From positions 124,001 to 188,000 of the IMG/VR virus record IMGVR_UViG_3300033153_013547: a stretch of 64,000 nucleotides of DNA, one strand, 5' to 3'. Position numbers and translations under genes: made by a program. The notes below the pieces were generated by a model, which worked only from the letters and a program-made list of their open reading frames with translations, had not been told where the DNA came from and ran no database searches. Within the stretch, counting starts at the first letter, position 1; every line of letters starts with the position of its first letter. Positions 16,543-35,300 of the stretch are shown here, one piece after another.

Positions 16543-19500
16543 ATGCGTGAGTATGAAAGTGATCGACTCTATGGTGGGCTAAAAAATCTTGGCATTCTTG
16601 CAAGTGTTGCTACGCTCGGCGTATGGGGATATAGATCTGGTCACGTTGCCAAAGCAGCTAGGTCACTTATACAAACCGGCTTCCCTGCCGTAAGAGCAGG
16701 ATTACAGGCCTTAAAACACACTGAAGAAGCCTATACAGCTTCACACATTGGTATTGGTGATGCTGTCAGTCAGTTTGGCATTCATTACCAGCGTGAATTC
16801 AAAAAGCTACAAAAATTTTATGCCACAAGAACTGCCACGGGCAACCCCCTTGATTCAATAATAGGTGCTGCTACACATCTTCCTTCTCTTTTAGAATCTA
16901 TACAAAGCTTTGTAACAGCCATACCACGGGCAGACTTTAGTCGAATTGGCTTTGAAGAAGCAAAAGGAGACTTAATACGTGATCTTGGCAAAATCAACCC
17001 CAACAGAGTTGTATCAGAAGAATTTGCCTATAGTGTTTATAGGATGCTTGGGCTTGAATCCCAAAAATTCACCCCCATATCTATTGGTGGACTTCATGTA
17101 AATGTAAATCAATTAAGCCAACTCACAACACACCATAAACCCCTGGACACCAGGGCAGTAAAAGCTGCATTTGATACTAGAAAAAAGAACCTCAAAGAAG
17201 ATTTTAGTAGATCTCAATTTGATGGTGGACTAACATTTATGAAGTGGCTACTGGGCGATCCCCAAGCTCGTAGAGCCACGTTATTTGATGTAAGACAAGA
17301 TCTAATCAATAGACTTGGTATTCGTGGCAAAACAGGAGCTGAAATAGACGAGAAGTTAGCAGCATATGTTGATAAAAGCTTAGACACGTTCAAACTGTCT
17401 GAAGATGCCAAAGTCATATTCAACGATCTCTTCTATGATCCCAAGGCAGCCAAAGAAATATTTTTAGATCACAATATCTTCAAAACAACAGAAGGGTTGT
17501 TAGATGCTAGATCAATAACGACATCTGTTGACGATCTTTTAGCCAGCCTCTCTAAACGTTGGAGAATTCCCCTAATCAAATGGAATCCATTTGATATGGT
17601 TCGTTCACAGCTTGCCCTAAAACAAACACAGCCATATGCAGTAGTTGTCACTGGTGATAAAATACCAATGCTGAGTGACAAGGACACAAACGTAATATAT
17701 TCCAAGATAGGTGAAAAACTATACAGATTCAAAAAGAAAGAAGCAGAAAAGTTTAGTTTTGAGCTTGTAGAAAAAATAGATTGGGGAGGTAAGAAAAGAC
17801 CATATAAAGTAATGCACCTTGATCCTTCAGCAGGCACAATGGGTGGCATTGTTGCCAAACGCCTGGGTCTCAGGGGTTATCATTCAGAAGCTCTGGACGA
17901 CATTGTGTTAGGCTGGGCAGCAAGGTTTGTTAAAGGAGGAATAGAGGGGGTTCCCGATCCCTATGTTTTTCTCAAAGAATTAGAACAGGGCAGATTGGTA
18001 GATTATGGTATTACAAGTCAGTCTCTTGAAAATCGATTAGAAAATTTTTGGAAAGGTGGCCTTCTCAATATAAATGTAGTTGCCATAGGCAAGTGGCTCG
18101 AAAAACAACTGGACAACCCCAAGATCACAGCAGAGGCAAGACAGAGCATTGCAGAATATGTTGATAGCCTCGTCTACAAACATCCTAAACAAGACAATAC
18201 ATTACACCTTGCCAGAATGATTGACAAGGCAATGGCAAAAGACACAGCATTTATGAGAATGTTCAAAGAGACAGGTGGTGTAGTCAAAGAACTGCTCAAT
18301 CTTTCTCCAGAACAACAGGAAGCCCGTATTCTTGAGATAGGAATGAAAAATGCTCTCAATATTTCTAAAAGATCTGTTGTAGAAGCAGGTGGTCAAAGAA
18401 CAATTTTAGAACGTATGGAAATGGATTTTGGAGTATGGAGTGTCTTAGAACACTTCAGACTGCTCAATAGTCCTGCCACTAGCATGAATGCCTTTATTAC
18501 TGGTGGACATATTACAGAATCTATGGCCCAGGAGATGGCAAGTCTCAAGATTCTGGATACATATTTGTATAGCATTATGAGAATGGCGCCAGCAAGAAAC
18601 AAGCTTCATTGGATGACACATGAAGGACATCAACTGGCAGCATTTGAAGCATTTAGCAAAACTCCAGATTGGGCAAGAATATTAAGAACACATTATGAAC
18701 CCTTAGACTCAATACGTATTCAAGATGCACTGATAAAGAAAAATGTTACGGCAACAGAAATTTATGAAAACCTAGCAAGGATCAACAAAGCAGCAGATAT
18801 CAGTGAAGTAGCAGGCATACTATATGACACAACCGTCGATGTAGGCGAAATGTTTCTCTCTGCGTTTGGATTCAGGGCCCAAGATTATGGAAGCTCAACC
18901 CTAATGCCACACTATTTTGCCGTAACACTATCAGAACAAATGGAGCTTCTAACGGGAATGATGGGTATTAGGCCATCAAACTCGTTGTGGGCCAAATCAC
19001 CCTTTTCTTTGGGCTTAGCATGGGCAGGTATTGAGGTGGCCTTTGGAACAGCAATCAATAGTTTCAACGCAGCAGATCTTGCCATGAGAGGCGCTGGTTT
19101 CAGGGGCCCCCGTCAATTTGCCATGGATGCTTGGGCCAACGCCAATCTACTCCTGGGTCTTGCTAGTGGCAAACTCAAAGAAACCCAGGATTATTATGCT
19201 GAGGGGGAAGAAGAAATAAGGGCCAGCAGATGGTGGTCATTAGGCAGCACCCCATGGGAAGGTGGAAGAATCAAATTCACTGTTCCCAACCTATACAGGC
19301 GTGTTGGAGTAAGAGACGTATACTACGAACAGAAATGGGGTGGAGAATTACAGGCTTTGGCCCACTCTTCATACCCATCCATACTAACACCATTTGCTCC
19401 AATAAGGCATTTCCTAACAGATAGATATTATTATGAACGTCTTCACCTGAAAGATGAACCTGTTCCACTGACTGGTGAATTGTTTGAACCCTCTGCACCA

Positions 19501-22464
19501 GGTGCTGGCTTACTCAATAACATGCTTGGTTTCATAATGAAACCACAGATAGGCATGCACACTGCAGAAATGCATCAAGCCATGAGATCTGATAGCATGC
19601 TTAGCACTGGTATTGATACAACCCCAAGAACAGGTGTGGATCAAGCAAGAATAAACACATTGTTCAGTCACAGAATAGTCACATCAGGTGCTGCTGGCCC
19701 AAGACTGGGTGCCAATAGACCAATATCTACACCTGATCGTTGGGGAACACAACTGGGAGATGATAGAAATAACAAAAATTTAGAAATGCGTGGAGCAATA
19801 ACAGCAGCCAATTTAGCATCAGGTAGCCAAGGCTCACCTTCACGTTTGGGTATAGCAGACTCTACTAGCCCATTCAATGCTCATCTAATAGACTACACAA
19901 GATCACAAATGGAATTGGCAGGTATTTGGGGTTACTATGGCCAAAACCTCACTGGACTAAACAACAGAATCTATAGAATGGAAACTGGTAGAGCAGGATA
20001 TTCCATATCAGATGCCATACAAAAAGCAAATGTAGGATCATGGTTGCCTATTCCAATGTTTGGGGAAATAATAACAGAGGTGCCAAGAAGAATTGTTGGT
20101 GGTGCCCCTAAGGATTATGTAATAAATCCTTTGAGAAATACTATGCCTACGTGGCTTCCTGACAGATTCAAATATGGGAATCAATATAACCGTTTGTCAT
20201 ATGGCCAATATAGGCTTCCGTCGCCAACTTACGAAGCACTGAACAAAGTAGATAGAGAAAGGATTGGTGGATCAACTATTGGCTTACCAATCAATGAATT
20301 GGCTGAAAAAATAGCTGGATTTGACAGAACAAAGATGGGGGCAACAGCTGTAACAGGCACTTTGATGCATAAAGCAATGTTACAAGAATTATTTCAAATG
20401 GGCAAGGTAATTGCTGTTGAAAAAGCAGTAGATGATCAGCAGCACAACATGTATGGATACATAGATGCCATAGTAGAAATAGGTGGACAACCAATGGTTG
20501 TTGATCTAAAAACTACTAATGCTATGAAGTTGCAAAGAATGAGAGAAGGAGAAATTCCTGAAGTATACAAGTCTCAGATCAATTATTATATGTGGGCTGC
20601 CAATGCCTCTATGGGTGCTTTGTATGTTGTAAATCGTGATAACCCAGCAGATAAAATGTTTTGGACAATGAAATTTGACGAAGGCAGACTACTTGACGAC
20701 TTCATCAAATTAGAAAAGGCCAGGGCAATGGTTAGAAGGCTCATTGAACAAGGCTATATTTCTCCATATGAAAGCTATAGGGACTTGGATAGGGCTAAAA
20801 TTTTGGCTGATGTTGCCCCTTATTCTGACGAATTTTCAGACACATTTGAAAGACTTTTGGCTGAGCCAGAAAAAGACATAACCAGACAAGAAGAACTTAA
20901 CAAACTAAAACTGAAAGTGAATAGGATCAAGTCAGGAGATACTTTTGACGAATATTTGTGGAGAAACCCTACAAAGGTCGTTGATGTTCAGAGCATGATG
21001 GTTGAAGATGATAATACCATAACCATGACATATAATTTCAGAGGCAAGAAAAGAACTCATACAGGTGTTCTTGCTGGGGCTATGCCAATAGAAGGTTATG
21101 AAGTGGCATTCAACAAAGCTCTCAAGCAACTAATGCCCATTGAAGCACTAGAAAACGTTAGAATAATGCCTGATGATCCTAAATCAAAAATCATCGTATT
21201 TACCAAGGGAGGTAATAGTGTAGCACAACAATTAGTGGACCTTCATCTTGGTTTGCCCGCCACAACAGGCAGACAAGAAGATAGAGAGGCTTTAATGAGA
21301 CATCAGGGATCATATGCTTGGGAATGGTTCACTCACTTAGATTCTCCTATGCACACCAAATTTGGGAAAGCAGATGCCTGGGAAGAATATAAAAGAAGAG
21401 TTGTATATGGCACAAGATATACATCTCCATTCACCCGTCCTATAAAATATACAGGACACATGTTAGAAGCCCTTGCTGGACACGACAACCCTATAGAAGC
21501 AGCCTTTGGTGGAGCCATGGTTGGAGCACTTATTGGTAGCACAGCAGGTAGATTAGCAGTGGGTGGCATGGCAAAAGGAGCAATAGCAGGTAGTATTTTG
21601 GCAGTTGCAATTTCTGGTGGACGTCAACTCATTGATCTTTTCACTGGTAAGGCTATGGTTCCACCAGAAGAAAGAAAATCAAGAGAGATAGAGGATTATG
21701 TGGACAAACTTGAATATGTCAAGTTTAAAAGGCTCTTTGAATCTACTTCCTTGATGTTAGAAAGAGCAGGAATCAATCTGTCTAAAATAGCCAATATGGT
21801 TATGTCTGGTAAGACAGTAGTTGATGAAGTAATGCAACAATTCCCTAACTATGGTCCTTTGATCAAAAGAGGGCTGTATTATAAACAAGAATATGAAAGC
21901 ACTATGTTTGCATTGAGTAGAGCCAGTGATATGAGAACTATTCTTAGAGCTTTACCCAAAAGAGAAAGACAATATTATTTGGCTTTCAAAAACTATCACC
22001 AACATAATAAAAAACAAATATTGAAACTAGCATCTCCATCACTGAGAAAGGCTCTGGCTATCACGTGGGGAGAAGACATGCCAGAGGGGGAATCTATAGA
22101 CAAATACTTCCAGTCTCATTGGCTACCAGAGCCCAGTTGGACAGGATGGCAACCAGATACATCTATCAGTGATTATAAGGTAGTTTTGGCAAGAGAAGAG
22201 GGGGTTGAATACCATGAATTGGGCATGTGGGAAGACTCAGTACAAAGAACCAGGATGTGGCAAGCTCAACCACGTATGCGTCATGGAACTGGCGTCAATA
22301 TGCAAAAAAGGATTAGAGAATTGTTAGGTAGAAACGGCCTGTCTGATATAAGTATTCAGATCTTACAGTCAACATCAGACAAAGACATTGATATAAACTT
22401 CACTATTCGGGAGGATGCATCCAGAAGTGCTGCAGTAAAATATGCGGCTAGTCTGGAAATGTAG
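16543..22464 (+). CDS. Tape-measure-position protein with PD-(D/E)XK nuclease and SNase-like domains
   Basis: Directly follows the chaperone frameshift pair; mostly helical with hydrophobic G/A-rich segments. GTLMH...GYIDA...VDLKT...QINYYM nuclease motifs at about 20356-20592; SNase-like segment at about 20968-21258. Confidence 0.75.
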   Translation: MREYESDRLYGGLKNLGILASVATLGVWGYRSGHVAKAARSLIQTGFPAVRAGLQALKHTEEAYTASHIGIGDAVSQFGIHYQREFKKLQKFYATRTATGNPLDSIIGAATHLPSLLESIQSFVTAIPRADFSRIGFEEAKGDLIRDLGKINPNRVVSEEFAYSVYRMLGLESQKFTPISIGGLHVNVNQLSQLTTHHKPLDTRAVKAAFDTRKKNLKEDFSRSQFDGGLTFMKWLLGDPQARRATLFDVRQDLINRLGIRGKTGAEIDEKLAAYVDKSLDTFKLSEDAKVIFNDLFYDPKAAKEIFLDHNIFKTTEGLLDARSITTSVDDLLASLSKRWRIPLIKWNPFDMVRSQLALKQTQPYAVVVTGDKIPMLSDKDTNVIYSKIGEKLYRFKKKEAEKFSFELVEKIDWGGKKRPYKVMHLDPSAGTMGGIVAKRLGLRGYHSEALDDIVLGWAARFVKGGIEGVPDPYVFLKELEQGRLVDYGITSQSLENRLENFWKGGLLNINVVAIGKWLEKQLDNPKITAEARQSIAEYVDSLVYKHPKQDNTLHLARMIDKAMAKDTAFMRMFKETGGVVKELLNLSPEQQEARILEIGMKNALNISKRSVVEAGGQRTILERMEMDFGVWSVLEHFRLLNSPATSMNAFITGGHITESMAQEMASLKILDTYLYSIMRMAPARNKLHWMTHEGHQLAAFEAFSKTPDWARILRTHYEPLDSIRIQDALIKKNVTATEIYENLARINKAADISEVAGILYDTTVDVGEMFLSAFGFRAQDYGSSTLMPHYFAVTLSEQMELLTGMMGIRPSNSLWAKSPFSLGLAWAGIEVAFGTAINSFNAADLAMRGAGFRGPRQFAMDAWANANLLLGLASGKLKETQDYYAEGEEEIRASRWWSLGSTPWEGGRIKFTVPNLYRRVGVRDVYYEQKWGGELQALAHSSYPSILTPFAPIRHFLTDRYYYERLHLKDEPVPLTGELFEPSAPGAGLLNNMLGFIMKPQIGMHTAEMHQAMRSDSMLSTGIDTTPRTGVDQARINTLFSHRIVTSGAAGPRLGANRPISTPDRWGTQLGDDRNNKNLEMRGAITAANLASGSQGSPSRLGIADSTSPFNAHLIDYTRSQMELAGIWGYYGQNLTGLNNRIYRMETGRAGYSISDAIQKANVGSWLPIPMFGEIITEVPRRIVGGAPKDYVINPLRNTMPTWLPDRFKYGNQYNRLSYGQYRLPSPTYEALNKVDRERIGGSTIGLPINELAEKIAGFDRTKMGATAVTGTLMHKAMLQELFQMGKVIAVEKAVDDQQHNMYGYIDAIVEIGGQPMVVDLKTTNAMKLQRMREGEIPEVYKSQINYYMWAANASMGALYVVNRDNPADKMFWTMKFDEGRLLDDFIKLEKARAMVRRLIEQGYISPYESYRDLDRAKILADVAPYSDEFSDTFERLLAEPEKDITRQEELNKLKLKVNRIKSGDTFDEYLWRNPTKVVDVQSMMVEDDNTITMTYNFRGKKRTHTGVLAGAMPIEGYEVAFNKALKQLMPIEALENVRIMPDDPKSKIIVFTKGGNSVAQQLVDLHLGLPATTGRQEDREALMRHQGSYAWEWFTHLDSPMHTKFGKADAWEEYKRRVVYGTRYTSPFTRPIKYTGHMLEALAGHDNPIEAAFGGAMVGALIGSTAGRLAVGGMAKGAIAGSILAVAISGGRQLIDLFTGKAMVPPEERKSREIEDYVDKLEYVKFKRLFESTSLMLERAGINLSKIANMVMSGKTVVDEVMQQFPNYGPLIKRGLYYKQEYESTMFALSRASDMRTILRALPKRERQYYLAFKNYHQHNKKQILKLASPSLRKALAITWGEDMPEGESIDKYFQSHWLPEPSWTGWQPDTSISDYKVVLAREEGVEYHELGMWEDSVQRTRMWQAQPRMRHGTGVNMQKRIRELLGRNGLSDISIQILQSTSDKDIDINFTIREDASRSAAVKYAASLEM

Positions 22465-22469
22465 CAATC

Positions 22470-25400
22470 ATGGCAATATACATTCCAACTTCTTCTACTG
22501 TATATGCAAGCGAAGACCTATTGCGGTTACCTGCCATGCTTGGAACAGAAGATGTTTTTGCCAAGTATCTTAGCAATATAACTGACAGAAAACATACTAT
22601 TACACTTTTTGTGATAGAAAGTGACAATCTACCACAAAAAAGGCTGGAAATTGTTTTGGAAGGAACAAAGATACGGGTTTATACAGAAACAACCACTACA
22701 CCAATCATTTTTTCCAATACAACGTTTACCAAAATGGAACCGTTTATTCGTAATGGCAAATTCGAAACCGCAGGACGTAACGTGGAAGTTAGAATACTGG
22801 CTCGTGATCTAGCCATTCTCATAGAAGAAACCAAATACCAGTCTGGTTCAGCATTCATACCTGATTCAATAGTGCAAATGGTCACAGCAGTTCAAAGAAG
22901 GACAGATCCAGAAGGAACGATAATCAACCTTATCACCGCTCTCGAAGAAAAAATGGCTCAAGTGCCCATAGGAAGAATAGGAGCCCAATTACCACGAACA
23001 CCAGGATTACAAGCGGGAGAGCATTTTATTACAGTTCTTGACGATCTAAAAAAGAGAGATGTGCTAAACGAAGGAATTAGAGAACTATCAGAAGCACGAA
23101 TCAGTGGAATAGCCAGAGGACAAACACCCGATATGGCTCAAAAAAAAACTCAAGCAGTCACTGCCATAGTTACCAAAGATTATCTGGATAGATTTTTTAG
23201 ACAAATAGTAGGTGGTGGCAAAAAAACTGTTACAGAAGAATTCGAAGAATTTGTCAAAACCAATAGGGTTGCCCAAATAATTGAAGATCTTGTAGATTGG
23301 CATGGCTGGATCACTGCCTTCTATGGTTATACAGGGCCTACTCAAGAGATTATAGAAACAGCCTTTGAAGAAGCTGCAAAGGAATACATTGGCATTGTAG
23401 GCCTACTATCTCCCGAGGAAAGAAGTAATATAAAGACCAGATTCATTGCCAAAGTAATGGATGGGATCAAAGAAAGAAAACAAGCAAATTTGCCATATGA
23501 AGTTAGTGTGCGTCTTAAGAAACTCAAATCCAGTGGGGCAGTAATAGATGTTGGCAAATTTGCCTTGTCAGCCCCAGATCAAATGACCAAATCCTTGGGA
23601 GCCAGAAATCTTAGTGATGCTTTTGGAACAACAAGAGTTCCTTCTGGGCTCAAAGAACACGTTAATCAGATTCTTGCTGCCCCACTACAGATCAGTAAGC
23701 CACTATACAGACAATACACACCTTACCAAGATCTAATATCCCTGATTGATCAACTAAAATCCATTCCTAAGTCTGGTGTTATTCCTAGAATATTAGACTT
23801 TGAGGGGTGGATTGGAGACAACATTACCCTCACAACCCAACTGGGTGTTCTGGATGTTGCTGATTGTGCCAAGAACTTCACAGAGATTACCAAAGCAGGC
23901 TCTCAGTTTATGATGTCCAGCAGACCTCATGGCATTCATGGTAAAGTAGATGAGCAAACAGCTACTTATTTGAAAGATGAGTTGCTCAAAATGTGGAGCA
24001 AAGCCAAGGCATGGTCACTTGATCCTAGAGAATCTCATTTCAACCCCAACGACAAAAACAGCAAACTGCTCATGAATCTTGGTAGAATGATTATTGCTGG
24101 TTCAGAAGATATGGAAACACAAGAACTCAGAGCTGCTACCATGGCCCAACTAAATGTTGAGGGCATTAGTGCAGACACATTATTAGACTGGTATGAAAAA
24201 GCACTTCATCAAAAAATGAGACACCACAAGTTTGAAGGCAAAGGAACAAAAGCAACACTCTCTGAATTTCAAGAGCTCATCAAAACCACATTCAAAGATG
24301 GTAGGGTTTTCATGCACAACCCAGAGGGTGCTGATATTACCCACATATACAATCTTTTAGAAAAAGGATCAGATCCTATAGCCTATGCAGAAGCCAAAAA
24401 ATTAGTGCAAAGCAAAACCACAGATAGTATTGCTATATTTCAGTATTTACAAGAATTGGCCATGGTTAGGGGGGACAAGTCTTGGGAAGATATGGCTTCA
24501 ACGTCTTTTGCCATGAACAATTTAGTCAAGAAGTATGAAAGCCTTATGGGGGGATTGACCACTGCAGATCTCCACCTGCTTGGTAAAAACGATGCTTATG
24601 CTGCAGGTCGACTCATGATTATCAGTCTGAATGCAGCAATGAACGACACCACCGCACATAGTATGGCTGATCAAGTATTTGCCAAAAGCGTTACATCTGA
24701 AACAATAACCAATAACTTACGATTTGTAGCAGAACTTTTTGATGAAAATCTTGCAAAAAACAAAAAACTCTTTACAAACATAGAAGATTGGATCAGAGTG
24801 GCCAGTGGTATTGATCCCTCAGAAGATTTGGGCTCTAAATTAGTTCATGAAGGAATTGAGGTTTATAGTATAGTAACCAAGCCTCTAAAAAGATCAGATC
24901 TTGAGCTATGGGCACAAAGATTCGATGTGACTATGGAGACCCCTGTCGGACTGGAACGACTGGAAATAAAACCACCACGAGGGCTACGTTTAGGACAAGT
25001 AGTTACTGATGATCCATCTGTATGGAGGGCGGGCACGGCGCTCAAAACACTTCTCCAAATGGACGCAAAAACCAATGAAATTCTATTTAGCTTCACAGAT
25101 ATGAATGGCATCCAGCATAAATTTAGGGCCAAAAACATATTAGCTCTAAACAACTTACTGGCTCAAGGAGGCTTTGAAACCACAACAGAAAAAGGAATGT
25201 CTAGATGGATCAACACACTCATGGACGATGCTCGAAGACTATTCGACAATCTCACTGGTTCTTTCAATGAAGATCCAAACATGATAGGACGAATAATTGA
25301 AATACATAGCAACAACATAAGAAACATTATAGATCATTCAACAAGAGACCCACAAATTGCGGGTATACTTGATAAAACATCAGAATTACTTGCTGCAATA

Positions 25401-26756
25401 AAATCTGGTGAACCACTATTTGACACAACCAATCCTCTAGGACATACTTTTATGCAGAACATGTTTGATCTACACAAGCTTGACTGGTTGGAGGGAGGCA
25501 GCAAGTCCATTGCAGAAGCAGTAATATTTGTGGCACAACACAAAAACAATCTTGAAGTTGTTGACACTATGCTAGGAAACCAGATGCTTTTACATCATCT
25601 AACCAAGAGCATGTATACTGGTGATGCTAGAAGTTTTCTAATGTATGATCAAGAATTAGCCGATAGATTAGGAAAATCAATGGAGGAAATTAGTTTTTAC
25701 AAATATAGCCCCCTGGCTGAAGGCACAGTGCTTGACAATGCTGTTTTGAGAATTGGGGACACAGATTCCTCGGTCATAGTATCAATGAATGCTCATAAAA
25801 CCCACGACGACATCAGGGCAATTTTGAGCAGAACCACAGACAAACATTCCAAGGCAGCAAGATTCTTGGCAGATGAATTTTTGGGTGAAACAATAGATCA
25901 AAAAACCTATGCACTGTCTAATAAAACAGAAAGAAAAGTGTTAGGAGACAGAATAGCAGCACAAATAATCAAGGAATCACAAGAGATCAATACCTTCAGA
26001 AGAACACATTCTGAATTGTTATACGAACCAACTATCGCTCCTGGCGTAGCCACGGGCAAAGGAAGAAGCGCCTGCGGAAGGGCTATTTTTGATGTTATCC
26101 ACGATGAAGAATTCATAGGCAGAATAGTGGGGAAAGGCCACACACTGTGGGAAGAACTCAAAATAGCTTCAGACACAGGTAGATTTAGAAACTTCCCAGA
26201 TGCCTTGATGCAATACGGTAATTCTATTATAGACACTATATCCGTGGCAGCAGAAGAAAGTGGACGTCTTAGAGACAAGACTTCAGCAGCCAACATAATT
26301 ATGGCATTCAATAATATGGGCATATTTGAACCTGCAAGTGTCGAGAATCGTTTCTTTCCACAAATGCCAAAAATACAGGCTGATATAAGTAAAACTGTTG
26401 TAAAGAACCTGGGTCGCATGGGAATGGCAGCAGCAGCAATTCCTCTAATTGCATTAGGTGCTGCTAGGCCCCCACTTAGAGGACTAGAAGAATTACCAGT
26501 AGATGAAGCATTTGATCCAGATTTTCTGCAAGGCAAAACATCAGCTGCTGGACCACCAATTGTTATTCAGAAACCACTTGGAATTACAATAAATATTGAT
26601 GCCAAGGGCACAGAAGGCAGATATGATTTGTCTAATATAATGAATAGCTTGAGACACACCATGGGAATAAACGCCGAACAGCGCGTGACAACGTCGTTTA
26701 ACAAGCTCTCTGATATTGAAATTGAGAGGCTCATGGAAATGGAGGCCATAGATTAA
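22470..26756 (+). CDS. Large protein with DEDDh (DnaQ-like) 3'-5' exonuclease motifs, probably virion-associated
   Basis: ExoI ILDFEG (23790-23807), HGI, ExoII FMHNPEGAD (24309-24335), DSIAIFQYL, ExoIII LHLLGKNDA (24570-24596), in the expected order with insertions. Confidence 0.65.
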   Translation: MAIYIPTSSTVYASEDLLRLPAMLGTEDVFAKYLSNITDRKHTITLFVIESDNLPQKRLEIVLEGTKIRVYTETTTTPIIFSNTTFTKMEPFIRNGKFETAGRNVEVRILARDLAILIEETKYQSGSAFIPDSIVQMVTAVQRRTDPEGTIINLITALEEKMAQVPIGRIGAQLPRTPGLQAGEHFITVLDDLKKRDVLNEGIRELSEARISGIARGQTPDMAQKKTQAVTAIVTKDYLDRFFRQIVGGGKKTVTEEFEEFVKTNRVAQIIEDLVDWHGWITAFYGYTGPTQEIIETAFEEAAKEYIGIVGLLSPEERSNIKTRFIAKVMDGIKERKQANLPYEVSVRLKKLKSSGAVIDVGKFALSAPDQMTKSLGARNLSDAFGTTRVPSGLKEHVNQILAAPLQISKPLYRQYTPYQDLISLIDQLKSIPKSGVIPRILDFEGWIGDNITLTTQLGVLDVADCAKNFTEITKAGSQFMMSSRPHGIHGKVDEQTATYLKDELLKMWSKAKAWSLDPRESHFNPNDKNSKLLMNLGRMIIAGSEDMETQELRAATMAQLNVEGISADTLLDWYEKALHQKMRHHKFEGKGTKATLSEFQELIKTTFKDGRVFMHNPEGADITHIYNLLEKGSDPIAYAEAKKLVQSKTTDSIAIFQYLQELAMVRGDKSWEDMASTSFAMNNLVKKYESLMGGLTTADLHLLGKNDAYAAGRLMIISLNAAMNDTTAHSMADQVFAKSVTSETITNNLRFVAELFDENLAKNKKLFTNIEDWIRVASGIDPSEDLGSKLVHEGIEVYSIVTKPLKRSDLELWAQRFDVTMETPVGLERLEIKPPRGLRLGQVVTDDPSVWRAGTALKTLLQMDAKTNEILFSFTDMNGIQHKFRAKNILALNNLLAQGGFETTTEKGMSRWINTLMDDARRLFDNLTGSFNEDPNMIGRIIEIHSNNIRNIIDHSTRDPQIAGILDKTSELLAAIKSGEPLFDTTNPLGHTFMQNMFDLHKLDWLEGGSKSIAEAVIFVAQHKNNLEVVDTMLGNQMLLHHLTKSMYTGDARSFLMYDQELADRLGKSMEEISFYKYSPLAEGTVLDNAVLRIGDTDSSVIVSMNAHKTHDDIRAILSRTTDKHSKAARFLADEFLGETIDQKTYALSNKTERKVLGDRIAAQIIKESQEINTFRRTHSELLYEPTIAPGVATGKGRSACGRAIFDVIHDEEFIGRIVGKGHTLWEELKIASDTGRFRNFPDALMQYGNSIIDTISVAAEESGRLRDKTSAANIIMAFNNMGIFEPASVENRFFPQMPKIQADISKTVVKNLGRMGMAAAAIPLIALGAARPPLRGLEELPVDEAFDPDFLQGKTSAAGPPIVIQKPLGITINIDAKGTEGRYDLSNIMNSLRHTMGINAEQRVTTSFNKLSDIEIERLMEMEAID

Positions 26757-29700
26757 TGACACAGACACCTTCACACATCAGTATTGAAAATCTACACAGG
26801 CAAGTAGTAGATAAAGTCATTGCACTGGATATGCATAGCATTTTACACACACTTGAAGAATCAGGAGCCATTGGGGGTGGCCTTACTCAAGAAGAACAGC
26901 TCAATACCATTCTCAATGCTGTAAAAAAGACGTCTTGGGGACAAGGCATCTCTCTTGAAAAACTATCCACATCACAAACTTCAGCATTGACGGGGCCATA
27001 TGACAGAAACAGGGTGGTTGCAGCTATTACTGCATCTGCTGAAGCATCTTCTATAATGAAGATAGTATTTAATCTCCAAAATTACAAGAGCAAAATCACA
27101 GGCAAGGAATTGTTTGATCAAGATATGATAGGGCCAAGGCTGTTGTTTTTATTAGAAAAACCACCTTCTGATGTGGAATCTATTGCCAAAACCTTTTCTA
27201 CATCTGACCAGCTGTCTAATAGAAACACTATTGCTGCAATGTTAAATACCTTCAACTACCTGGCAGCAATAGACAAAGTACATAGTGACTGGGATAAAAG
27301 GTTGGCAGAAGGGGAAACCCCCCAACAATTACAACGAACTGTCAATGATTTAGTAAATAAGATAAAAACCGACGTTAATCGAGCCAACGAATATAATCTT
27401 GATGCACAACATCTTGCAACGAGAATGCGTAAAAAAGATACATTACAGCAATCTCTGAAAGTAGTAAGTGATCCAAAACTCATCCGGCTTGAATCAGACA
27501 TTAGACAGGGCATTAAAGCAAAGCTTTCTGGAGACACCACTGGCAATGCTGTTTTGCTAATAGCTGATGTTGATGCTAAGGGCAATCAAGTAGGAATGTA
27601 TAAATCCATGAGGGAATTTTTGACCTCTTATGGATTCAATCAGCCAGAAATTATTGCAGAAGCTCTGGATATACAAATACAGCATCCACAAAACTTTGAT
27701 CAAGCAACAAAAGCACTGAAGGCTACAGATAAACTTCCTGAATTTCTTTTCAAGTTGAAAAAGGGCGACAGAGAAAGGGTGTTTAGGGGCAGGCTTGGTC
27801 CTGCTCCAGTTAGACACCCCCAAATAGACATAACGAAAGGTTTTCCCTACAATCTTGTCTTGGCTGCCCATCCTGATAGCACAATACCTGGTGGTAAAGC
27901 AGCCCAGCGAGCCACAAGTGGGATAGGAGTTAATCAGGTATACGTGAGTCTTCTAAACTTAGCCAGAATAAACGCAGACTATGATGGGGATACAATCATA
28001 AATTACATAAATACCAATCTAAAATCTGAGATACTTCAATACATAAAAGAACATGGTAAAAAAGAGAGCCCTGGGCTAGTATTAGTTGGGGCCATGGATA
28101 TGATAATTAAATCCCTGGCATTCGGTGAGGAAACCAAGAAAGAACTGATAAGTGCTGGAATGCTACGCTCCAAGCTGAGAGAACGAGTAGGCGTAATGGC
28201 TCGCCAAAGAGCAAACTTTGTATCCAAAAGAATCCTCAAAAAGTCTTATATCCCAGGACAAACAATGGTATTAGAGATTGGGGGCATCAAATATGGATTG
28301 GAAGCTAATCCTGCTCAGGGAATAAAAGAAATAGAAGTCCTCATAACTGAAACAATTATGAAGAATTTTGACAAAAACATGAATCCTGCAAAAGCATTTG
28401 TCAGAGCAGAAGAATTGATACATCAAGAGGGGGATATTTATGTTTTTGATCATCTTGCCAACAAAAAACTTTCTGGAATAGAAGTTGTAAAGTGGCAAGA
28501 GAAAAATATAAACCGTGCTCTCATTGAAGACAATCTACTGAAATGGGGATTGCACCTAAGTGATCGTGTAAAGAGACTGGGCGCAGACAATGCTCTCATA
28601 AAACAATTCATGGCAAAATTGGCAGACACAAAAGATCCAGACAATTTCTTAAGATCTATGGAAGCCATAAATGACATAGCACAAGATATTATCAGCAGAG
28701 GAGATGTTTCTGAAGAAACAGTCAGCAAAATTATAAAAGAACATGCCAGAAAAACGGGCATTGCTTTTGAAGCACACAAAATACTTAAAGGGGGAGTAGG
28801 GGAAATTGGAGTGATACAGTATGCGTTCTTTGAACACGTACACAATAACATCAAATATTTGTCCAATATTGGTGCAGAACAATTAACAGATCTCAAAAAA
28901 TTAGCTGATTTCTTTGAGGTAATGGCACAAATTCCGTTAGAAGCAAAGCACAAAACAGGTGGTTCTTTCAAAATGATAGCCCACATCCTTCGCACGGTTC
29001 TCAAGGGTGGAGGTGTCAATGTTAAGGACACGGCTCAAGACATAACAAACATTCTAATGCGTGGAAAGATGCCAGAAGTACTCGCAAGTGTCACGGCTAC
29101 TGCTTATCCGGTTGGCCAAATTTGGGAAGGCGAGGGTTTTACTCTACATCGTACAAACCTAAGAAACTGGGTAGAAGAAGCTATTCGTGTTTTGGCAAAT
29201 CCGCGTATATCCACAGCAATACAAGAACAAATTAGCAACAAATCAGCATGGACAGGGGGAGCGGGAGCAGCGGCAAGGGTTGCGGGCGGCATGGAAAGCA
29301 CTATTATTGAACTTACTGGAACCAAAGATATTACCCAAGCATTTGAGGGAGCACTAAGCATCAACCCAAAAGACCCAGGCGCCGTTGATGTTGTCAAAGA
29401 ACTTCACCAACTTAGTACTTCTAGTTTTAAAAGACGTGACTACGACAGTTTTACTCGCAAGCCCAACGAATTAGCAACCATCATTTCTGAAAAAGCAAAA
29501 AAGAATGTTTATGAAATTGCTCGTGTTACAGACAAAAGTGGCATATCTAAATTAGAACTAAGACAAATCTATGATCCTAACAAACCAGAAACCTTCGACG
29601 CCATAGCCTCGCGGCTACCTGCTGGAGTAGTTCCAGACGAAGACACAATACAATTTGTTATAAATGATAGGGTGCGAAAGCAAATACAAAATGGAAGAGC

Positions 29701-32332
29701 CGATTATCTCATGCCTGAATTTATGGAAACAGAGCTGAGAAAAAGAGGCGTAATGATAGAGGCAATGCAACGATTAGAAGGTGAAATGCTATCTCTATCT
29801 AAGGTCAGCACAATAGCAGATGAAGAAAAAGCAGCACTATCCAAGAATTTATATGCCTTTGCAATGGAATGGCATGAAAAAGTTCATGGTGGGAAAAGAG
29901 GGGCAGAGCATTCGTTTATCGAAGCATTTGGTGATTATCTAAAGAACACTGGTATTACTGCGTTAGACTTAGAAGAAAGTGGTCATATAGAACAATATGG
30001 GAAAAAAGTCATGTCTGCTATGGCAGATCTTAAAATAATATTTAGCAGCCCAACCAGTGGTCAAATAGCAAATCTACTGGGTGGTTCAATTGCATCAATA
30101 CCTGCAATAACAAATGCTGAAGAATTACAACAACTCGTAGCAACAAGAGTATTTGATCCTATGGCCAGAGTATTTGCAAAAGGCCAGTCAACAGAACTGG
30201 GAATCAACTTTATCAACGAAGGTGCCGTGCAAAATCTTGTCAACAAAGTCAGAACCATGGAAAGCCAGGGCATCAATCAGAGTGAGCTACAAAAAATATT
30301 TGCAAAAATTACTGGCTTAAATGAAGAACTAATCACAGATCCCCTTATGCAAGACATTGCAGACAAATTTCAAAAACTTCTCAATCAGTCTGAGGGTGCA
30401 ATGTGGATCCTAAATTGGCAACAAGTAGCTACAGTGCAAGAAATGAAGATCAGTGAAGAAAGTGCAAAAATCTTTAGTAAAGCTCTGCAAGGAATCTATG
30501 CTTCTGGTGAAGAAGCACTTGATGTTGTGCCAGGCACAAAACAATATGAAAGATTCTTGCAGCAATATGCTGCAGCTGAAGGAAAACACTCTCCTCAGTA
30601 TCTCAGAGATCATGGTATTCCTTTTACTGACGCCACAGGCAAACCACGCACTATTCGGCCAGAACATATGGGGCTAAACTTCCGCCCACTTATTCATGGC
30701 GATAAATATGCCATGGTGCAATGGAAAGGCTTTCAAGCAAGTCAAATCCCCTTTGCCAAGGCCCACCTATCTGGCCTTGCGTTTCCAGTAGGAAGCCTTA
30801 TGGAAGAAGTTATAGAAGAAGCGGGTAAAAAACCGGAAAACGTATACAATCGGCTTGCAGCTTTCATGATGAGTGGTGATCTAAATGCTATTGATTCATG
30901 GCTTGGGGAAGCAGAAAAAACAAATATTTTGATACCACGAAATCCCTTCAACAAATGGGCACGTGCTTTTTTAGGAGCAGCTCCTGGGTGGAACGCACAT
31001 AACGAGCGAGCAACTGCAACGGGTGTGGGACCCACCGTTGTGATAAATCTCGTAGAGGACTTGGGTCTTAGAGATGTTTTTGTTACATTGAGAGAGGGGC
31101 AATCTCCAGAATTTTCAGATATGATGACAAACATAATTGCTGAAGAAGCACCTGGTGGAAGCATAGGATTATATCGTATGGTAGAAGAATTGTCACGAAT
31201 ACGTACCAAACCACTGGTTGCACTTGAAAAACAGGGAATAATCAACCTACGTTATCTGGATCAAAACATGCTGCGTGATCCTCTGTTAGAACGAGCAACA
31301 ATGGGAGATCAAGTTAGACTGAGAAACACCATAAGACTAACAGAGCTTGGCATAGACAACACTACTAAAATTGATGAAATATTGCTCAAAAAGATCAGGG
31401 CAACTTTCCCAGCAGATGATAGCATAATTGTTGGACATAATGATTTAATCACCCAAATCCTAGCAGCAGACAAAAAACGAAATATTCTAGGCACAAAATT
31501 TGGGGCCATTGGCTACACAAAGGGAATTTATGACTATCTACAAGTAGCCATGGAAATGTTAGATGACATAATGGCTCCTGAAGATATTCCCATTGGACAG
31601 AGAAACCAGTGGGTTATAGAAAATATCCTTGCTGGATTTATCAACCCATCAGATTTACCCATAGATGAAGCAAGAGTTATAGATGCAGGCAAAAATATTT
31701 ACAAAAGGAATTTATACAATCTTGGTCAATCTTCTGAATGGATCAATAGATATGCAACAGATTATTCTGATACATTTAGAAAATCTATAGGAGCCAATGT
31801 TCATGATTTTATAACACAGGTAGGAGAAAGAAACCCAAAGATCATGGGGACACTTGGCCTCATAGCATTGGGAGTGGGAGCTTTTTCTGTGGCAAATATG
31901 CTGGATTATACCAGTCTAAAGGCTAATGAAGACAATCTTCATCAGTATTCAACTAATAAAAGATTAGCAGATTCCATGGCACATGCCAAGACATATGATC
32001 CGCGAATCATTGTTATAGATGGCATAGCCGCAAACGAAACTACTGAAGCAATAACTGGACTATCTAGTCCTCATTCAAGGGCCATGCAAAAGTTTGGCCC
32101 TATTGTGAATCGTCCCCCAAGTGGTGGCAGTAATGGACTTTTTAGAAGAGAAGGTATGGGGTATAACATACCCATATCAGAAGCCAGATCAGCAAGATCT
32201 CTACAAGAAATAAGCAGTGTTATATCTAATAGAAAGTTCAATGTAAATACTAATATAAAAGTTGTTCAAAGGGCTAATGCCGACAGTATAAAGACATATT
32301 ATAATAACTATGTAGAATATGGCAGTTTCTAA
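26756..32332 (+). CDS. Single-chain two-barrel RNA polymerase-like protein (putative virion RNA polymerase)
   Basis: NADYDGD at 27971-27991 with upstream RHPQI and RQGIKAK...GNQVGMYKSMREF; bridge-helix-like HARKTGIAFEAHKILKGG (28742-28795); trigger-loop-like QIPLEAKHKTGG (28928-28963); beta-like GDKYAMVQWKG (30698-30730), EAGKKPENVYNRL and GPTVVINL. Confidence 0.82.
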   Translation: MTQTPSHISIENLHRQVVDKVIALDMHSILHTLEESGAIGGGLTQEEQLNTILNAVKKTSWGQGISLEKLSTSQTSALTGPYDRNRVVAAITASAEASSIMKIVFNLQNYKSKITGKELFDQDMIGPRLLFLLEKPPSDVESIAKTFSTSDQLSNRNTIAAMLNTFNYLAAIDKVHSDWDKRLAEGETPQQLQRTVNDLVNKIKTDVNRANEYNLDAQHLATRMRKKDTLQQSLKVVSDPKLIRLESDIRQGIKAKLSGDTTGNAVLLIADVDAKGNQVGMYKSMREFLTSYGFNQPEIIAEALDIQIQHPQNFDQATKALKATDKLPEFLFKLKKGDRERVFRGRLGPAPVRHPQIDITKGFPYNLVLAAHPDSTIPGGKAAQRATSGIGVNQVYVSLLNLARINADYDGDTIINYINTNLKSEILQYIKEHGKKESPGLVLVGAMDMIIKSLAFGEETKKELISAGMLRSKLRERVGVMARQRANFVSKRILKKSYIPGQTMVLEIGGIKYGLEANPAQGIKEIEVLITETIMKNFDKNMNPAKAFVRAEELIHQEGDIYVFDHLANKKLSGIEVVKWQEKNINRALIEDNLLKWGLHLSDRVKRLGADNALIKQFMAKLADTKDPDNFLRSMEAINDIAQDIISRGDVSEETVSKIIKEHARKTGIAFEAHKILKGGVGEIGVIQYAFFEHVHNNIKYLSNIGAEQLTDLKKLADFFEVMAQIPLEAKHKTGGSFKMIAHILRTVLKGGGVNVKDTAQDITNILMRGKMPEVLASVTATAYPVGQIWEGEGFTLHRTNLRNWVEEAIRVLANPRISTAIQEQISNKSAWTGGAGAAARVAGGMESTIIELTGTKDITQAFEGALSINPKDPGAVDVVKELHQLSTSSFKRRDYDSFTRKPNELATIISEKAKKNVYEIARVTDKSGISKLELRQIYDPNKPETFDAIASRLPAGVVPDEDTIQFVINDRVRKQIQNGRADYLMPEFMETELRKRGVMIEAMQRLEGEMLSLSKVSTIADEEKAALSKNLYAFAMEWHEKVHGGKRGAEHSFIEAFGDYLKNTGITALDLEESGHIEQYGKKVMSAMADLKIIFSSPTSGQIANLLGGSIASIPAITNAEELQQLVATRVFDPMARVFAKGQSTELGINFINEGAVQNLVNKVRTMESQGINQSELQKIFAKITGLNEELITDPLMQDIADKFQKLLNQSEGAMWILNWQQVATVQEMKISEESAKIFSKALQGIYASGEEALDVVPGTKQYERFLQQYAAAEGKHSPQYLRDHGIPFTDATGKPRTIRPEHMGLNFRPLIHGDKYAMVQWKGFQASQIPFAKAHLSGLAFPVGSLMEEVIEEAGKKPENVYNRLAAFMMSGDLNAIDSWLGEAEKTNILIPRNPFNKWARAFLGAAPGWNAHNERATATGVGPTVVINLVEDLGLRDVFVTLREGQSPEFSDMMTNIIAEEAPGGSIGLYRMVEELSRIRTKPLVALEKQGIINLRYLDQNMLRDPLLERATMGDQVRLRNTIRLTELGIDNTTKIDEILLKKIRATFPADDSIIVGHNDLITQILAADKKRNILGTKFGAIGYTKGIYDYLQVAMEMLDDIMAPEDIPIGQRNQWVIENILAGFINPSDLPIDEARVIDAGKNIYKRNLYNLGQSSEWINRYATDYSDTFRKSIGANVHDFITQVGERNPKIMGTLGLIALGVGAFSVANMLDYTSLKANEDNLHQYSTNKRLADSMAHAKTYDPRIIVIDGIAANETTEAITGLSSPHSRAMQKFGPIVNRPPSGGSNGLFRREGMGYNIPISEARSARSLQEISSVISNRKFNVNTNIKVVQRANADSIKTYYNNYVEYGSF

Positions 32333-35300
32333 CAATTACACAGAGACCGTAAATCTTGGTGGCGTGACGTTCAATGTCCCCATAACTAACATCAAAACAT
32401 CTGTCCAGAGTAACATAACGTCTTCCAATTCAATTAGAGAATCTGGATCTGCTAAATTACAAACAGATCAGATTGTAGAATTGCTGGAAATAACGTTTTA
32501 TGCCTTTGATCAAAATGGGCTGAAAACTGCTGCAAGCCTCATGCAACTCTATAAAAATATACCCTTTGTATGGGTTGCTTCTCCATATATCAATGCTGGG
32601 CTCAATATATGTGATGTAGCACTGCATAGTGTTACTATTTCTAGTGTTCCTGGGTTCCCCAATACATATAAAATAGACTTGGTTCTTGCCCCCTTTGACT
32701 CGTTTGCTATAACCAACTGGCCCACCCTATTATCTGGCACAAATCTTGAGCTGTATTATACATATCAAACATATGTAGCAAACAAGACTGCAAAAAGACT
32801 TGGCTCAACCAAACAATATGGTGTTATGTTACCTACTGATCCTCCTGGGCAACCAAATCCCTTTGACATTTTTGTGCCATCTGATGACTTTTTGGAAGAG
32901 ACCAAAATGGCCATGGACATGATTGATAATGCCCTAAAGAATGCTATTACATTTTCCAATAAAAACGAAGATGGATTGTATGCAGTAATCACACGCGACA
33001 TAGGAACAGACAATACTCCAGAAGAAATGTCTAAGAAACTGGCTGATCAACTCAAAGGATATTTATTAAATGCTGTGGCCAAAGATGCAGACGGCAATGA
33101 AATTAGTTTATTTACCAAAAACAAAAATGGAGACATTGTGCCAGCCCCATGGGACAAATGGCAACAGTGCAGAATATTTGATGTTTATGATCCTGACACA
33201 GGCAAAATACTTACTGGTGCATCTGCAGAAAGCAAGTTCCTAAATCTTTTTGAAGCCATAGAAGAAGCCATTGGGCAAAACTCTCTTGAAGAATACATAA
33301 GAAGAATAGATGCAAATCAATCTTTAGCAACCTTTCTCAATTCTTTTGCCAGTATTGCCAAAAATACAGATCTATACACACATGCAGCTACAGCACTCCA
33401 AATCAACGCAGTAGATATAAATTTAATTAGGCAAGTAATAACAGGAGAAAATCTTCAACTCAAAGTCAAGTTGCCTAATTATTCCTACGGACAGGAGGGT
33501 GCAGCAATAAACAGGGGATATTGGGATTATCTTCTGATGGGTGTAAATATAGATGTAAATATTGGAGGAAATTTCAAAGCCCAAGCTCCTACAACAACCA
33601 ATCAAACAGTCCCAGATCACTTAGATTTATTTGTTGAAGACATTGACTCACTAAAAAGACCAGGTTTCCTTGGTTTACTTTATGACATATATCTAGGAGC
33701 CAGAGGCTTTCAAAATATATTGTCTGGAGCCACAGAATCACTTGCAAAATTGTTTGATAGAGACAGATATAGAGAAAGTGGATATATTCCAGCAGGACTA
33801 ACCCAATTTTCCCCACAGCAGGTTGTTGTTTCATTCAACAACAAATTTTCTACTGGATATTTGCAAAATGCTCTGACTGTAAGACCCATATATTCCTATG
33901 TTGGATCAGGAGACTTCACAATACAAATACTAAATACTGTTACAGATCCTGACCATAGTGAACTGAAAAAATTTACAGATACAATAGATTTGGCTTTCTT
34001 ACAAAACAAAAAGTTCCAGGGAGAATTGCCTGCAGGATTTATTGCTATTAGAGACCCATTGGTTCAGTCAATGGGTATTTTTGAGTGTCTGATAATTGGT
34101 TATTCTGTTACTCCTATGCCAGAATATCCCAATGTTTTTCATGTAGAACTTACTACAACTGATTTCAATTTACAGAAACGCACAGAATACATGATCAACC
34201 GCATTGATCCTTATGGAAAAATACATGGTGGCGATGACAAAAGCACTGCTGCCGCAACAGCACTATCTTCTTCATTGCTTGATCCTGTTTTTGATCCTGC
34301 GTCACAATTTTCATCGCAAGAACCGAGAACACTTGAGACGGCGTTTGGAGAGCAACAAATACAATACGATCCAGAATATAAGCCACCCACAACCAGCAAT
34401 AGTGCCTCTGGTAGCGAAGCCTACTATGATTATGAAAACATAGATGGTGGAGATATATTATGCGTCAAAGAATTATATCAAGACTGGTTCAGAGCCAAGT
34501 ATTCACTCAGACAGTATAATTGTTACCCAGATATTATTTTACCAACACTACACGAGGCACAAATTATATTTGGTGATTTTGACAAGCCCATATCCATTGC
34601 TACTGGTGCAACCAATATTGACAACCCCTCCACTGCTGAAAACAAAACAGAAGTTCATGTGCTAAAAGACTTCAAAGCATACTATGAATGGCGTCAGGCA
34701 GGGCTGATCAACGGAGAAAGAACAGATCCATTCATGGACTATGGGGGAGATATCAATGTTACTAAATTAGATTGGACTGAAACTGGTGAATATGTAGTGC
34801 CCTATTTTTTCTTCTATCCATCAAGGATTGAAGTAATCAGTGATGCAAATGCAAATGTCAATCAATATGACACTCCACTTATAGGAGGAGATGATCAACT
34901 AAACCGAGGAGATAATCAACTAAACCTCAGTAGTTTCAATATAGACGGAGATATCAACGGAACAACAGAACAACCAGATGGCTCCTCTGCCATTACCGAA
35001 AAAGAAAAAATATACGAATCTCCATTTGGTGCCGCTGCGCGGGTGTTTGGGCTGGCGCCTGTGGCGCCGCCCCCTACAGCACCAGCTGGATCCATAACTG
35101 ATGTTACAGAAGACATTGCAGAAAATTCGGAGTCAGGCACGCCTGCAACAACAAAAGAAAAAAGCACGATGCAGGAGAAGATGGTTGGAAAGAAACGTAT
35201 CAAGAAAATTAAGGAAATACAAAAACACCAGGCAGAACACCCCACTACAGATGATGAAGTCGGCACGGAAGACACAGCATTTACAATGCCTCTTGGTGAA

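Follow-up and report, generated by a model that had tools for sequence, protein, structure and literature searches.

To our knowledge, the virion RNA polymerases (RNAPs) of bacteriophages were known before 2024 as capsid cargo only, and a siphoviral tape-measure fusion was then found in Thermus phage P23-45. In this phage, the tape-measure-fused virion RNAP gp96 is described as transcribing the pre-early genes (Chaban et al. 2024, PMC10770324). The tail module of Bacillus phage 0305phi8-36 encodes gp145 (1930 amino acids, aa) and gp146 (2537 aa, 'hypothetical tape measure'), both virion proteins by mass spectrometry according to GenBank notes, followed by gp147, a hub with wall-degrading domains. 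The literature on 0305phi8-36 names gp146 as the tape measure and finds its conservation among relatives limited to the final ~60 residues (PMC2147016); in the available sections of these papers and of the GenBank record, gp146 is described as putative tape measure only and gp145 as virion structural protein only. The present analysis concerns a 64-kb window (the whole stretch of DNA that was analysed) of the 261-kb viral contig IMGVR_UViG_3300033153_013547, and in particular three consecutive giant open reading frames (ORFs) on its + strand, to which all coordinates below refer: ORF A (16543-22464, 1973 aa), ORF B (22470-26756, 1428 aa), and ORF C (26756-32332, 1858 aa), all stop-free. With moderate confidence, they are read here as an unbundled version of a tail-delivered cassette belonging to the 0305phi8-36 lineage, with A as a nuclease-bearing gp145-like protein, B as a tape-measure-like end, and C as the polymerase. 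The cassette is apparently widespread in the lineage and undescribed. Support for this reading comes from synteny, from the homology of A and of the following ORF D, from the enzyme modules of the gp146-slot family, from their co-occurrence, and from the conservation of catalytic residues.

The sizes of the three giants, a 5-nucleotide (nt) gap at the A/B junction, and a TAATG stop/start with 1-nt overlap at the B/C junction, as given in a preliminary description of this DNA, match the coordinates exactly. ORF D (32319-40244, 2641 aa), a baseplate hub/tail lysin homologous to 0305phi8-36 gp147, KLEB27-3 gp035, and MTATph1 CDS0032, starts 14 nt before the end of C, so that the four giants A-D probably form one translation unit. 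Residues 1758-1891 of D constitute a Phage_lysozyme domain (Pfam, 2.5e-14), and the protein matches PHROG 20474 at 5.9e-71. The placement of the cassette in the tail module, between chaperone-position genes and the hub, was correctly recognized at the outset: sheath and tube genes lie upstream, and the lysozyme-bearing D lies downstream. Gene order in the window is colinear with ORF139-147 of 0305phi8-36, that is, sheath, tube, tube paralogue, gp142, chaperones gp143/144, gp145, gp146, and gp147. The window phage is an uncultured jumbo myovirus and very distant kin of 0305phi8-36. Its only cultured relatives are the Bacillus phages 0305phi8-36, KLEB27-3, WH1, and Edson and the Moorella phage MTATph1, at 24-31% protein identity.

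Among related phages, the protein family encoded in the gp146 slot has an RNAP fold and the identity of a DEDDh exonuclease. Most members share one layout, consisting of an N-terminal DEDDh 3'-5' exonuclease, a two-barrel RNAP in the second half, and a C-terminal module of ~150 aa, which is significant in 40 ORFs and always located at the extreme C-terminus. KLEB27-3 gp034 (2434 aa, 'structural protein') fills this slot; it carries N-R-Y-P-T-I ... A-D-Y-D-G-D at aa 1892-1937 and matches Pfam RNA_pol_Rpb1_2 below threshold (E 0.0014). Its family, as delineated by a word-index search, comprises 36 clusters of 2,400-2,540 aa, with one of 1,809 aa, and includes the WH1 'virion structural protein gp095' as well as a protein labelled 'DNA polymerase III epsilon subunit-like' by JGI. 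The DEDDh residues D96, E98, D270, H351, and D356 are invariant in the alignment of this family, as are the RNAP-barrel residues R1893, P1895, D1933, D1935, G1936, and D1937. Pfam RNase_T matches are found in 6 of 17 members (best 1.5e-6), the exonuclease part of MTATph1 CDS0027 lies above the Pfam cut-off, and the family exonuclease profile matches solved DEDDh exonucleases at 5.5e-6. In a 55-sequence alignment of the RNAP region, whose members share 12-47% identity, P616 and the Asp triad D654/D656/D658 are invariant and R614 is nearly so, which bears out the expectation that catalytic residues would be retained across homologues. An AlphaFold model of this region built on the same alignment reached a predicted local distance difference test (pLDDT) score of 81.8 and a predicted template modelling (pTM) score of 0.74. 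Searched with Foldseek, the model gave 283 PDB matches with E<=1e-3, the best 50 of which are all RNAP beta-prime chains, from phage AR9, bacteria, and plastids; its matches in BFVD are viral RNAP subunits. Association of the homologues with the virion, the other point raised in the preliminary description, is likewise borne out by GenBank notes, where virion or structural labels are attached not only to gp145 and gp146 but also to KLEB27-3 gp031/033/034 and WH1 gp095.

The family also shows departures from this layout. In 0305phi8-36 (L002), gp146 (22624-30237) retains a region matching the exonuclease profile at aa 1300-1543, and the RNAP module looks as if it had been lost from the slot or relocated. 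In MTATph1 (L004, 12513-19869), a transposase gene (CDS0028) breaks up the gp146-like gene, with the exonuclease portion in CDS0027 and the C-terminal module in CDS0031. At two loci (L063, 234-1886; L020, 216-1868), a 551-aa ORF located ~10 kb 5' of the tail giants is recognized by the profile of the RNAP region at E ~1e-40; to judge from this match, it may represent a second, small RNAP paralogue, comparable to the non-virion RNAP of P23-45. Among the BFVD matches of the family model are a siphoviral 'minor tail protein' (A0A8S5SD80_1, 5.9e-10) and a protein of the Acinetobacter jumbo phage ME3 (A0A172Q021_2, 3.2e-9), both of which share the predicted RNAP fold. Given these two model-based matches, tail-associated RNAPs may exist beyond the 0305phi8-36 lineage.

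The distribution of the modules was assessed by a census. A profile of the gp145 C-terminal region recovered 58 viral loci, 45 of them non-redundant and distinct from the window, and in each the ORF 3' of the gp145-like gene was scored, an RNAP being called by profile or by the pattern R-x-P...DxDxD. This ORF contains an exonuclease in 27 of the 45 loci, an RNAP in 30, and both in 23; since several loci are incomplete, these counts are lower bounds. All three modules, including the PD-(D/E)XK nuclease described below, occur together at four loci (L011, L018, L019, and L032). The hub homologue normally follows directly 3' of the gp146-slot gene. The norm in the lineage is therefore two giant genes, with exonuclease and RNAP mostly fused, and the window, where two ORFs (B and C) separate the hub from the gp145-like gene, is an unbundled variant. 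The synteny check proposed in the preliminary description thus returned a divided answer: the modules do co-occur in related genomes, but their usual state is two giants with an exonuclease-RNAP fusion rather than three separate genes. Five loci initially considered as three-part arrangements (L047, L055, L057, L058, and L062) were rejected, as they actually contain a gp145-like gene, one shorter gp146-like gene, and then the hub. Short gp146-slot proteins consisting of the C-terminal module only were found at L047 (1242 aa) and L045 (805 aa). At L040 (5849-12556), the gp145-like ORF (2236 aa) itself also fits R-x-P...DxDGD, besides the next ORF (3295 aa), possibly by chance. A scan of metagenome-assembled genomes returned three contigs only, with no sign of a prophage reservoir.

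ORF A aligns with 0305phi8-36 gp145 by BLASTP in two segments (4e-53 and 9e-38) spanning aa 879-1958, and a tblastn search with A detected gp145-like genes in MTATph1, Edson, WH1, and KLEB27-3. Besides this significant homology, A occupies the same position as gp145, directly after the chaperone genes. The preliminary description had taken A for the tape measure; it is instead the gp145 homologue, the tape measure of the literature being gp146, whose slot is filled by B and C (PMC2147016). Its nuclease assignment fared better. A PD-(D/E)XK (RecB/Cas4-like) domain is located at aa 1265-1403 (20335-20751) and matches PHROG 1706 at 7.8e-13; the score of Pfam PDDEXK_1 on this domain (21.2 bits) falls just under the cut-off of 22. 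The core motifs D1308, D1318-L-K1320, and Q1344...Y1348 are all present, and the alignments identify A as a gp145 orthologue carrying an intact PD-(D/E)XK motif set. The D, (D/E)xK, and QxxxY residues are kept in A and in seven of the eight other domain-bearing lineages; in the eighth (L036), the (D/E)xK and QxxxY residues are lost. The domain is found in 8 of the 45 related loci and is also inserted in 0305phi8-36 gp145. Its absence from the gp145 homologues of MTATph1 and KLEB27-3 indicates that it is a sporadic insertion. The gp145-like gene of KLEB27-3 (L005, 7827-14980) is divided into gp031 and gp033, with the 211-aa gp032 between them, and the break coincides with the site of the PD-(D/E)XK domain in A and in 0305phi8-36 gp145. 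Cas4 proteins are distinguished by a four-Cys Fe-S cluster. An assignment of the A domain to Cas4 proper was rejected, as TIGR00372 scored 16.3 bits against a cut-off of 65 and no Cys cluster is visible; its motifs place the domain in the PD-(D/E)XK superfamily outside Cas4. A second, SNase-like nuclease in A, also proposed earlier, did not hold up: Pfam SNase has no match in A and reached E 0.17 in one of four gp145-family members. As far as can be judged from the alignment of the gp145 C-terminal family, the SNase catalytic positions are substituted or not conserved. The probable source of this reading is a conserved region of the gp145 family at aa ~1478-1590 (20974-21312). A short match to A was also seen in the Acinetobacter jumbo phage ME3.

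The candidate RNAP is encoded by C, where the two-barrel RNAP motif of the preliminary description is indeed present as V-R353-H-P355 ... I-N-A-D408-Y-D410-G-D412, with R-x-P located 53 aa upstream of the Asp triad. NADYDGD is the near-universal NADFDGD with a change of F to Y, and R-x-P upstream of the triad is equivalent to R446/P448 of Rpb1 (PMC2919709). From composition, 0.009 occurrences of D[FY]DGD and 3.6e-5 of NAD[FY]DGD are expected by chance in the 7,900 aa of A-D. When residues 1-700 of C were compared with the 55-sequence RNAP alignment by hhalign, a single match was obtained (E 0.0011), in which C 352-418 is placed on the R-x-P...DxDGD region and R353-H-P355 on the N-R-Y-P of the family. 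An iterated RNAP profile, built with the window sequences excluded (Z=420), matches C alone among A-D, with E 0.0016 in the first round and 2e-6 in the second. The matched segments are colinear (aa 136-224 and 391-479), the first aligning with the helical connector that lies 3' of the second barrel in relatives. Together they define an RNAP-homologous region at aa 136-479 (27161-28192), which includes the beta-prime-like barrel at aa 352-418. Among the 100 named ESM-Atlas clusters that lie nearest to C 1-700 by language-model features (score 0.83), more than 80 contain RNA_pol_Rpb1_2 or LEF-9, which is taken as a lead only. Residues 243-305 of C match pertussis toxin S1 at chance level (E 0.5, 10.8 bits), a similarity dismissed as noise. 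The presence of a polymerase active-site barrel in C is apparent at the level of motifs and weakly so at the level of profiles, and C is probably a relative of the two-barrel RNAPs. We read it as the polymerase module freed as a gene of its own, with a long and unique C-terminal part.

ORF B, a sequence orphan, fills the first half of the slot of gp146, the presumed tape measure. At its C-terminus (aa 1296-1416, 26355-26717) lies a module composed of a hydrophobic Gly/Ala stretch and alternating beta-strand, and nothing in the window other than the extreme C-terminus of B resembles the module that closes gp146-slot proteins: by hhalign, B 1315-1383 aligned with the C-terminus of the family at E 0.052, and an iterated C-terminal profile aligned there with E 0.16. 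On these alignments, we regard B as a tape-measure-like remnant of a gp146-type protein. A simple split of one gp146-like gene into B and C was considered and dropped because B has a complete C-terminal module of its own. The DEDDh exonuclease assigned to B in the preliminary description is discernible only faintly: a sub-significant alignment remains, but B lacks the canonical DEDDh signature and has no Pfam, PHROG, or NCBIfam match. The candidate degenerate region spans aa ~435-720 (23772-24629), with D444-x-E446, H614-N615...D620, and H702...D708. In the alignment with the family exonuclease, HNPEGAD of B (614-620) falls on YNILNFD with the same unusual N-x4-D spacing, H702...D708 falls on HLALSD, and the putative ExoI, I-L-D444-F-E446-G-W, lies 171 aa from ExoII as compared with 167 in the family. 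With 10.2 bits, the segment exceeds the highest score (6.9) obtained in ~470 shuffles, a comparison with a selection bias, since the segment was picked after the motifs had been seen. A decayed or very divergent exonuclease in B is on these grounds conceivable, if somewhat doubtful.

A number of results weigh against the reading of the window as an unbundled enzyme cassette. A word search of 5.8 billion proteins returned nothing for C but the window's own proteins, no homologue of C 1-1200 was found by HMMER among 1.84 billion representatives, and C had no tblastn match in 50,697 phage records, a scan of viral contigs finding its own contig only. For B, no homologue was detected in the same phage records and proteins or in the related loci. 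Neither protein has a homologue by phmmer among all ORFs of the 58 related loci, a match in Pfam, PHROG, NCBIfam, or PDB sequence searches, or a similarity to 0305phi8-36 gp146 by BLASTP. A hidden Markov model of the whole gp146-slot family matches none of A-D, and profiles built from its poorly conserved central part match neither B nor C. For C in particular, later rounds of the RNAP profile lose the match as the alignments degrade, the second, beta-like barrel, the source of basic residues in two-barrel RNAPs, was not located, with only ~350 aa preceding the barrel with the Asp triad, and a single-sequence AlphaFold model of residues 1-900 has a pLDDT of 37.6. Moreover, gp146 of 0305phi8-36 has no DxDxD Asp triad, and this phage encodes a YonO-like RNAP, gp99, away from the gp146 slot (PMC2147016, PMC7824862, PMC2919709), which together imply that the polymerase module is dispensable in the slot. 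It is close to an even chance that A and C are the only enzymes, B being a plain tape measure that acts as a length ruler and whose DEDDh-like residues are coincidental. This explanation accords with the lack of any family match of B, with the non-significant score of the exonuclease profile (E 0.14, Z=420), with an ExoIII spacing of x5 instead of x4, one residue longer than in the family, and with the language-model Atlas neighbours of B 400-760, which comprise no exonuclease and are mostly tape-measure clusters at low score. B also resembles gp146-slot proteins at the C-terminus only, and slot proteins reduced to that module exist at L047 and L045. On the other hand, B is the best match of the exonuclease profile in the window, with ExoII and ExoIII aligned, the N-x4-D spacing shared, a plausible ExoI, and a score above all of the shuffles.

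That A, B, and C might be purely structural proteins of the tail lumen or tail tip, with enzyme motifs that are inactive relics or chance occurrences, is quite improbable. The slot and exonuclease region retained by 0305phi8-36 gp146 despite its missing triad, the nuclease at L036 with its missing residues, and the status of B and C as very fast-evolving orphans would all fit such a view. Yet the Asp triad and R-x-P persist, the former invariant and the latter nearly so, over relatives as divergent as the 55 aligned here, the nuclease motif set is kept in A and most of the other lineages that have the domain, and chance occurrence of the C motif is expected at <=0.009; taken together, these observations indicate selection on catalysis. 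It also appears improbable that the proteins are ejection or cargo proteins from the capsid interior, like N4 vRNAP, crAss-like cargo, or the ejection proteins of phiKZ and SPN3US, and are merely encoded beside tail genes. Three to four chains of 1400-2600 aa are much for one tube lumen, and the characterised giant virion RNAPs other than P23-45 gp96 are, as far as is known, head-packaged (N4, crAss001, and phiKZ; see the discussion in PMC10770324). Against this, in ~45 divergent genomes the genes are placed strictly after the tail chaperones and before the hub, which is the canonical tape-measure position. The gp146-slot proteins, like tape measures, end in a conserved module and have hydrophobic segments rich in Gly, and there is a correlation of length with the very long 0305phi8-36 tail (PMC2147016). 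As originally proposed, A, B, and C could finally form a single co-ejected complex combining transcription with genome-end processing, transcript trimming, or the destruction of host or defence nucleic acids. Tight translational coupling through the 5-nt gap and the 1-nt and 14-nt overlaps, the occurrence of all three modules at four related loci, and the fusion of exonuclease and RNAP into a single chain, seen in 23 of the 45 relatives, where the two activities would work side by side, all point in this direction. However, the PD-(D/E)XK domain is found in just 8 of 45 loci, and exonuclease and RNAP each also occur without the other, so that no module is obligatory for the others; a complex of the three is accordingly unlikely. 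The preferred reading of the window remains that of an unbundled, tail-delivered cassette.

By analogy with P23-45 gp96 (PMC10770324), which provides a precedent for tail delivery, A, B, and C would become part of the tail during assembly and probably occupy the lumen of the tube. Upon sheath contraction, the proteins would exit via the tube, ahead of or alongside the DNA. The polymerase could then transcribe the first phage genes independently of the host RNA polymerase, while the nucleases might attack nucleic acid of the host or of the incoming phage where the genome enters; possible targets are host DNA, genome ends, nascent RNA, and defence nucleic acids. In the lineage at large, the RNAP of the tape-measure slot, usually fused to an exonuclease, probably enters the host with the DNA in the same manner. 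A bolder proposition, advanced only tentatively, is that 0305phi8-36-like jumbo myoviruses (at least 45 contigs, 36 clusters) deliver through their contractile tails a DEDDh exonuclease-RNAP fusion encoded in the tape-measure gene, constituting a new class; in such a fusion, the exonuclease would serve the processing of transcript or template ends or the attack on host nucleic acid where the phage enters, and the window would represent the same modules unbundled, as individual chains translated together, beside a PD-(D/E)XK partner.

The remaining features of the window fit its assignment to the tail module. The entire 64 kb is a single + strand block of structural genes with a GC content of ~35-43%, and 0 tRNA genes were found in positions 1-64000. 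No Shine-Dalgarno-like sequence was seen in the few bases read 5' of the starts of A, B, C, and D. The tail sheath gene (9513-12209) was identified by PHROG 16991 (1.5e-47) and by a tblastn match to the 0305phi8-36 sheath, and it is followed by the genes for the tail tube (12238-13101) and a tube paralogue (13170-14414), identified by tblastn to 0305phi8-36 gp140 and gp141, respectively. The label 'major head protein' attached to both through PHROG 9206 was rejected as misleading, since they are homologues of the tail tube proteins gp140/gp141; the MTATph1 record carries the same misleading label. An unassigned ORF at 14418-15512 separates the tube paralogue from two small ORFs (15541-16113 and 16185-16526), which are putative chaperones by position alone. 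Baseplate wedge genes lie 3' of D, and D itself has a strongly hydrophobic stretch at aa 2506-2534. Hydropathy scans further detected a Gly/Ala-rich hydrophobic segment in A (aa ~1640-1700, 21460-21642), the G columns of which are conserved in the alignment of gp145-like proteins, and a hydrophobic Gly-rich segment in C (aa 1695-1716, 31838-31903).

If the reading of the window and its relatives is correct, a tail-delivered RNAP is a common strategy among jumbo myoviruses of a lineage that is large, ancient, and for the most part uncultured, and it is coupled there to one or two nucleases. The strategy would be modular, being fused in most members, split in the window phage, and lost from the slot in 0305phi8-36, and the annotation 'tape measure' in phages of this lineage would change. 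The cultured Bacillus phages KLEB27-3, WH1, and Edson would be ready test systems, and the lineage would offer a natural series for how large enzymes traverse a tail tube. It also raises the idea of an RNAP working beside a 3'-5' exonuclease. The finding is broader than first described, as it concerns a lineage-wide cassette, yet less unprecedented, as a tail-delivered RNAP is known: where the preliminary description knew of no characterised system with this combination, the tape-measure-fused virion RNAP of P23-45 is a characterised precedent and the closest one.

Several single-chain RNAPs of phages serve as further points of comparison, namely, gp66 of phi14:2 (a crAss-like phage), YonO of SPbeta, and the vRNAP of N4. 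Both gp66 and N4 vRNAP initiate early transcription as giant proteins delivered by the virion; they are packaged in the capsids of podoviruses, and their genes lie outside the tape-measure slot. N4 vRNAP is T7-like and not a two-barrel enzyme, whereas YonO is not a virion protein. None of the three is known to be fused to a DEDDh exonuclease. With 0305phi8-36 (Thomas et al. 2007; Hardies et al. 2007, PMC2147016), the window has its gene order in common: A corresponds to gp145 (4e-53) with the same PD-(D/E)XK insertion, and D corresponds to gp147. In 0305phi8-36, gp146 combines an exonuclease region with the C-terminal module, whereas the window has two ORFs, B and C, in the gp146 slot, neither of them significantly similar to gp146. 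KLEB27-3 gp034, WH1 gp095, and the Edson family occupy the same slot, are annotated as structural, and contain DEDDh exonuclease, RNAP, and C-terminal module in one fused chain of ~2,450 aa, to which the match of C is weak (E 0.0011; 2e-6) and that of B sub-significant. A literature search, with most subscription journals outside its scope, found no description of an RNAP or exonuclease in gp146-like proteins, and phages of the 0305phi8-36 lineage are not among the entries in the accessible part of the survey tables of the P23-45 paper (PMC10770324).

P23-45 gp96 shares with the proteins described here a giant size, a place in the tail module at the tape-measure position, a single-chain two-barrel RNAP, which is predicted here, and DxDGD as the sole sequence-level signature. 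It is a virion component with a proposed exit via the tail, whereas virion status of the relatives here derives from record notes. No sequence similarity to gp96 was detected, and gp96 is outside the best 50 of the 283 Foldseek PDB matches, a ranking that involved no direct comparison of the two proteins. Several differences exist between the systems. The siphovirus P23-45 has a genome of 83 kb and encodes the 5,002-aa gp96, in which an N-terminal RNAP is accompanied by a metallopeptidase. The members of the present lineage, in contrast, are jumbo myoviruses, and in the relatives a protein of ~2,400-3,300 aa has the RNAP in its second half, preceded by a DEDDh exonuclease. While the RNAP of these relatives lies within a slot protein that bears the tape-measure-like C-terminal module, the module is weakly discernible in B of the window and the predicted RNAP is placed in the separate ORF C, beside a gp145-like, nuclease-bearing giant. 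What is new with respect to P23-45 consists in these differences: the lineage is one of jumbo phages with contractile tails, the RNAP has an exonuclease fused upstream of it, a partner protein bears a nuclease, and, in the window, the genes are split. Among the systems found in this analysis, this is the first case of a predicted virion RNAP in the tape-measure slot of myoviruses.

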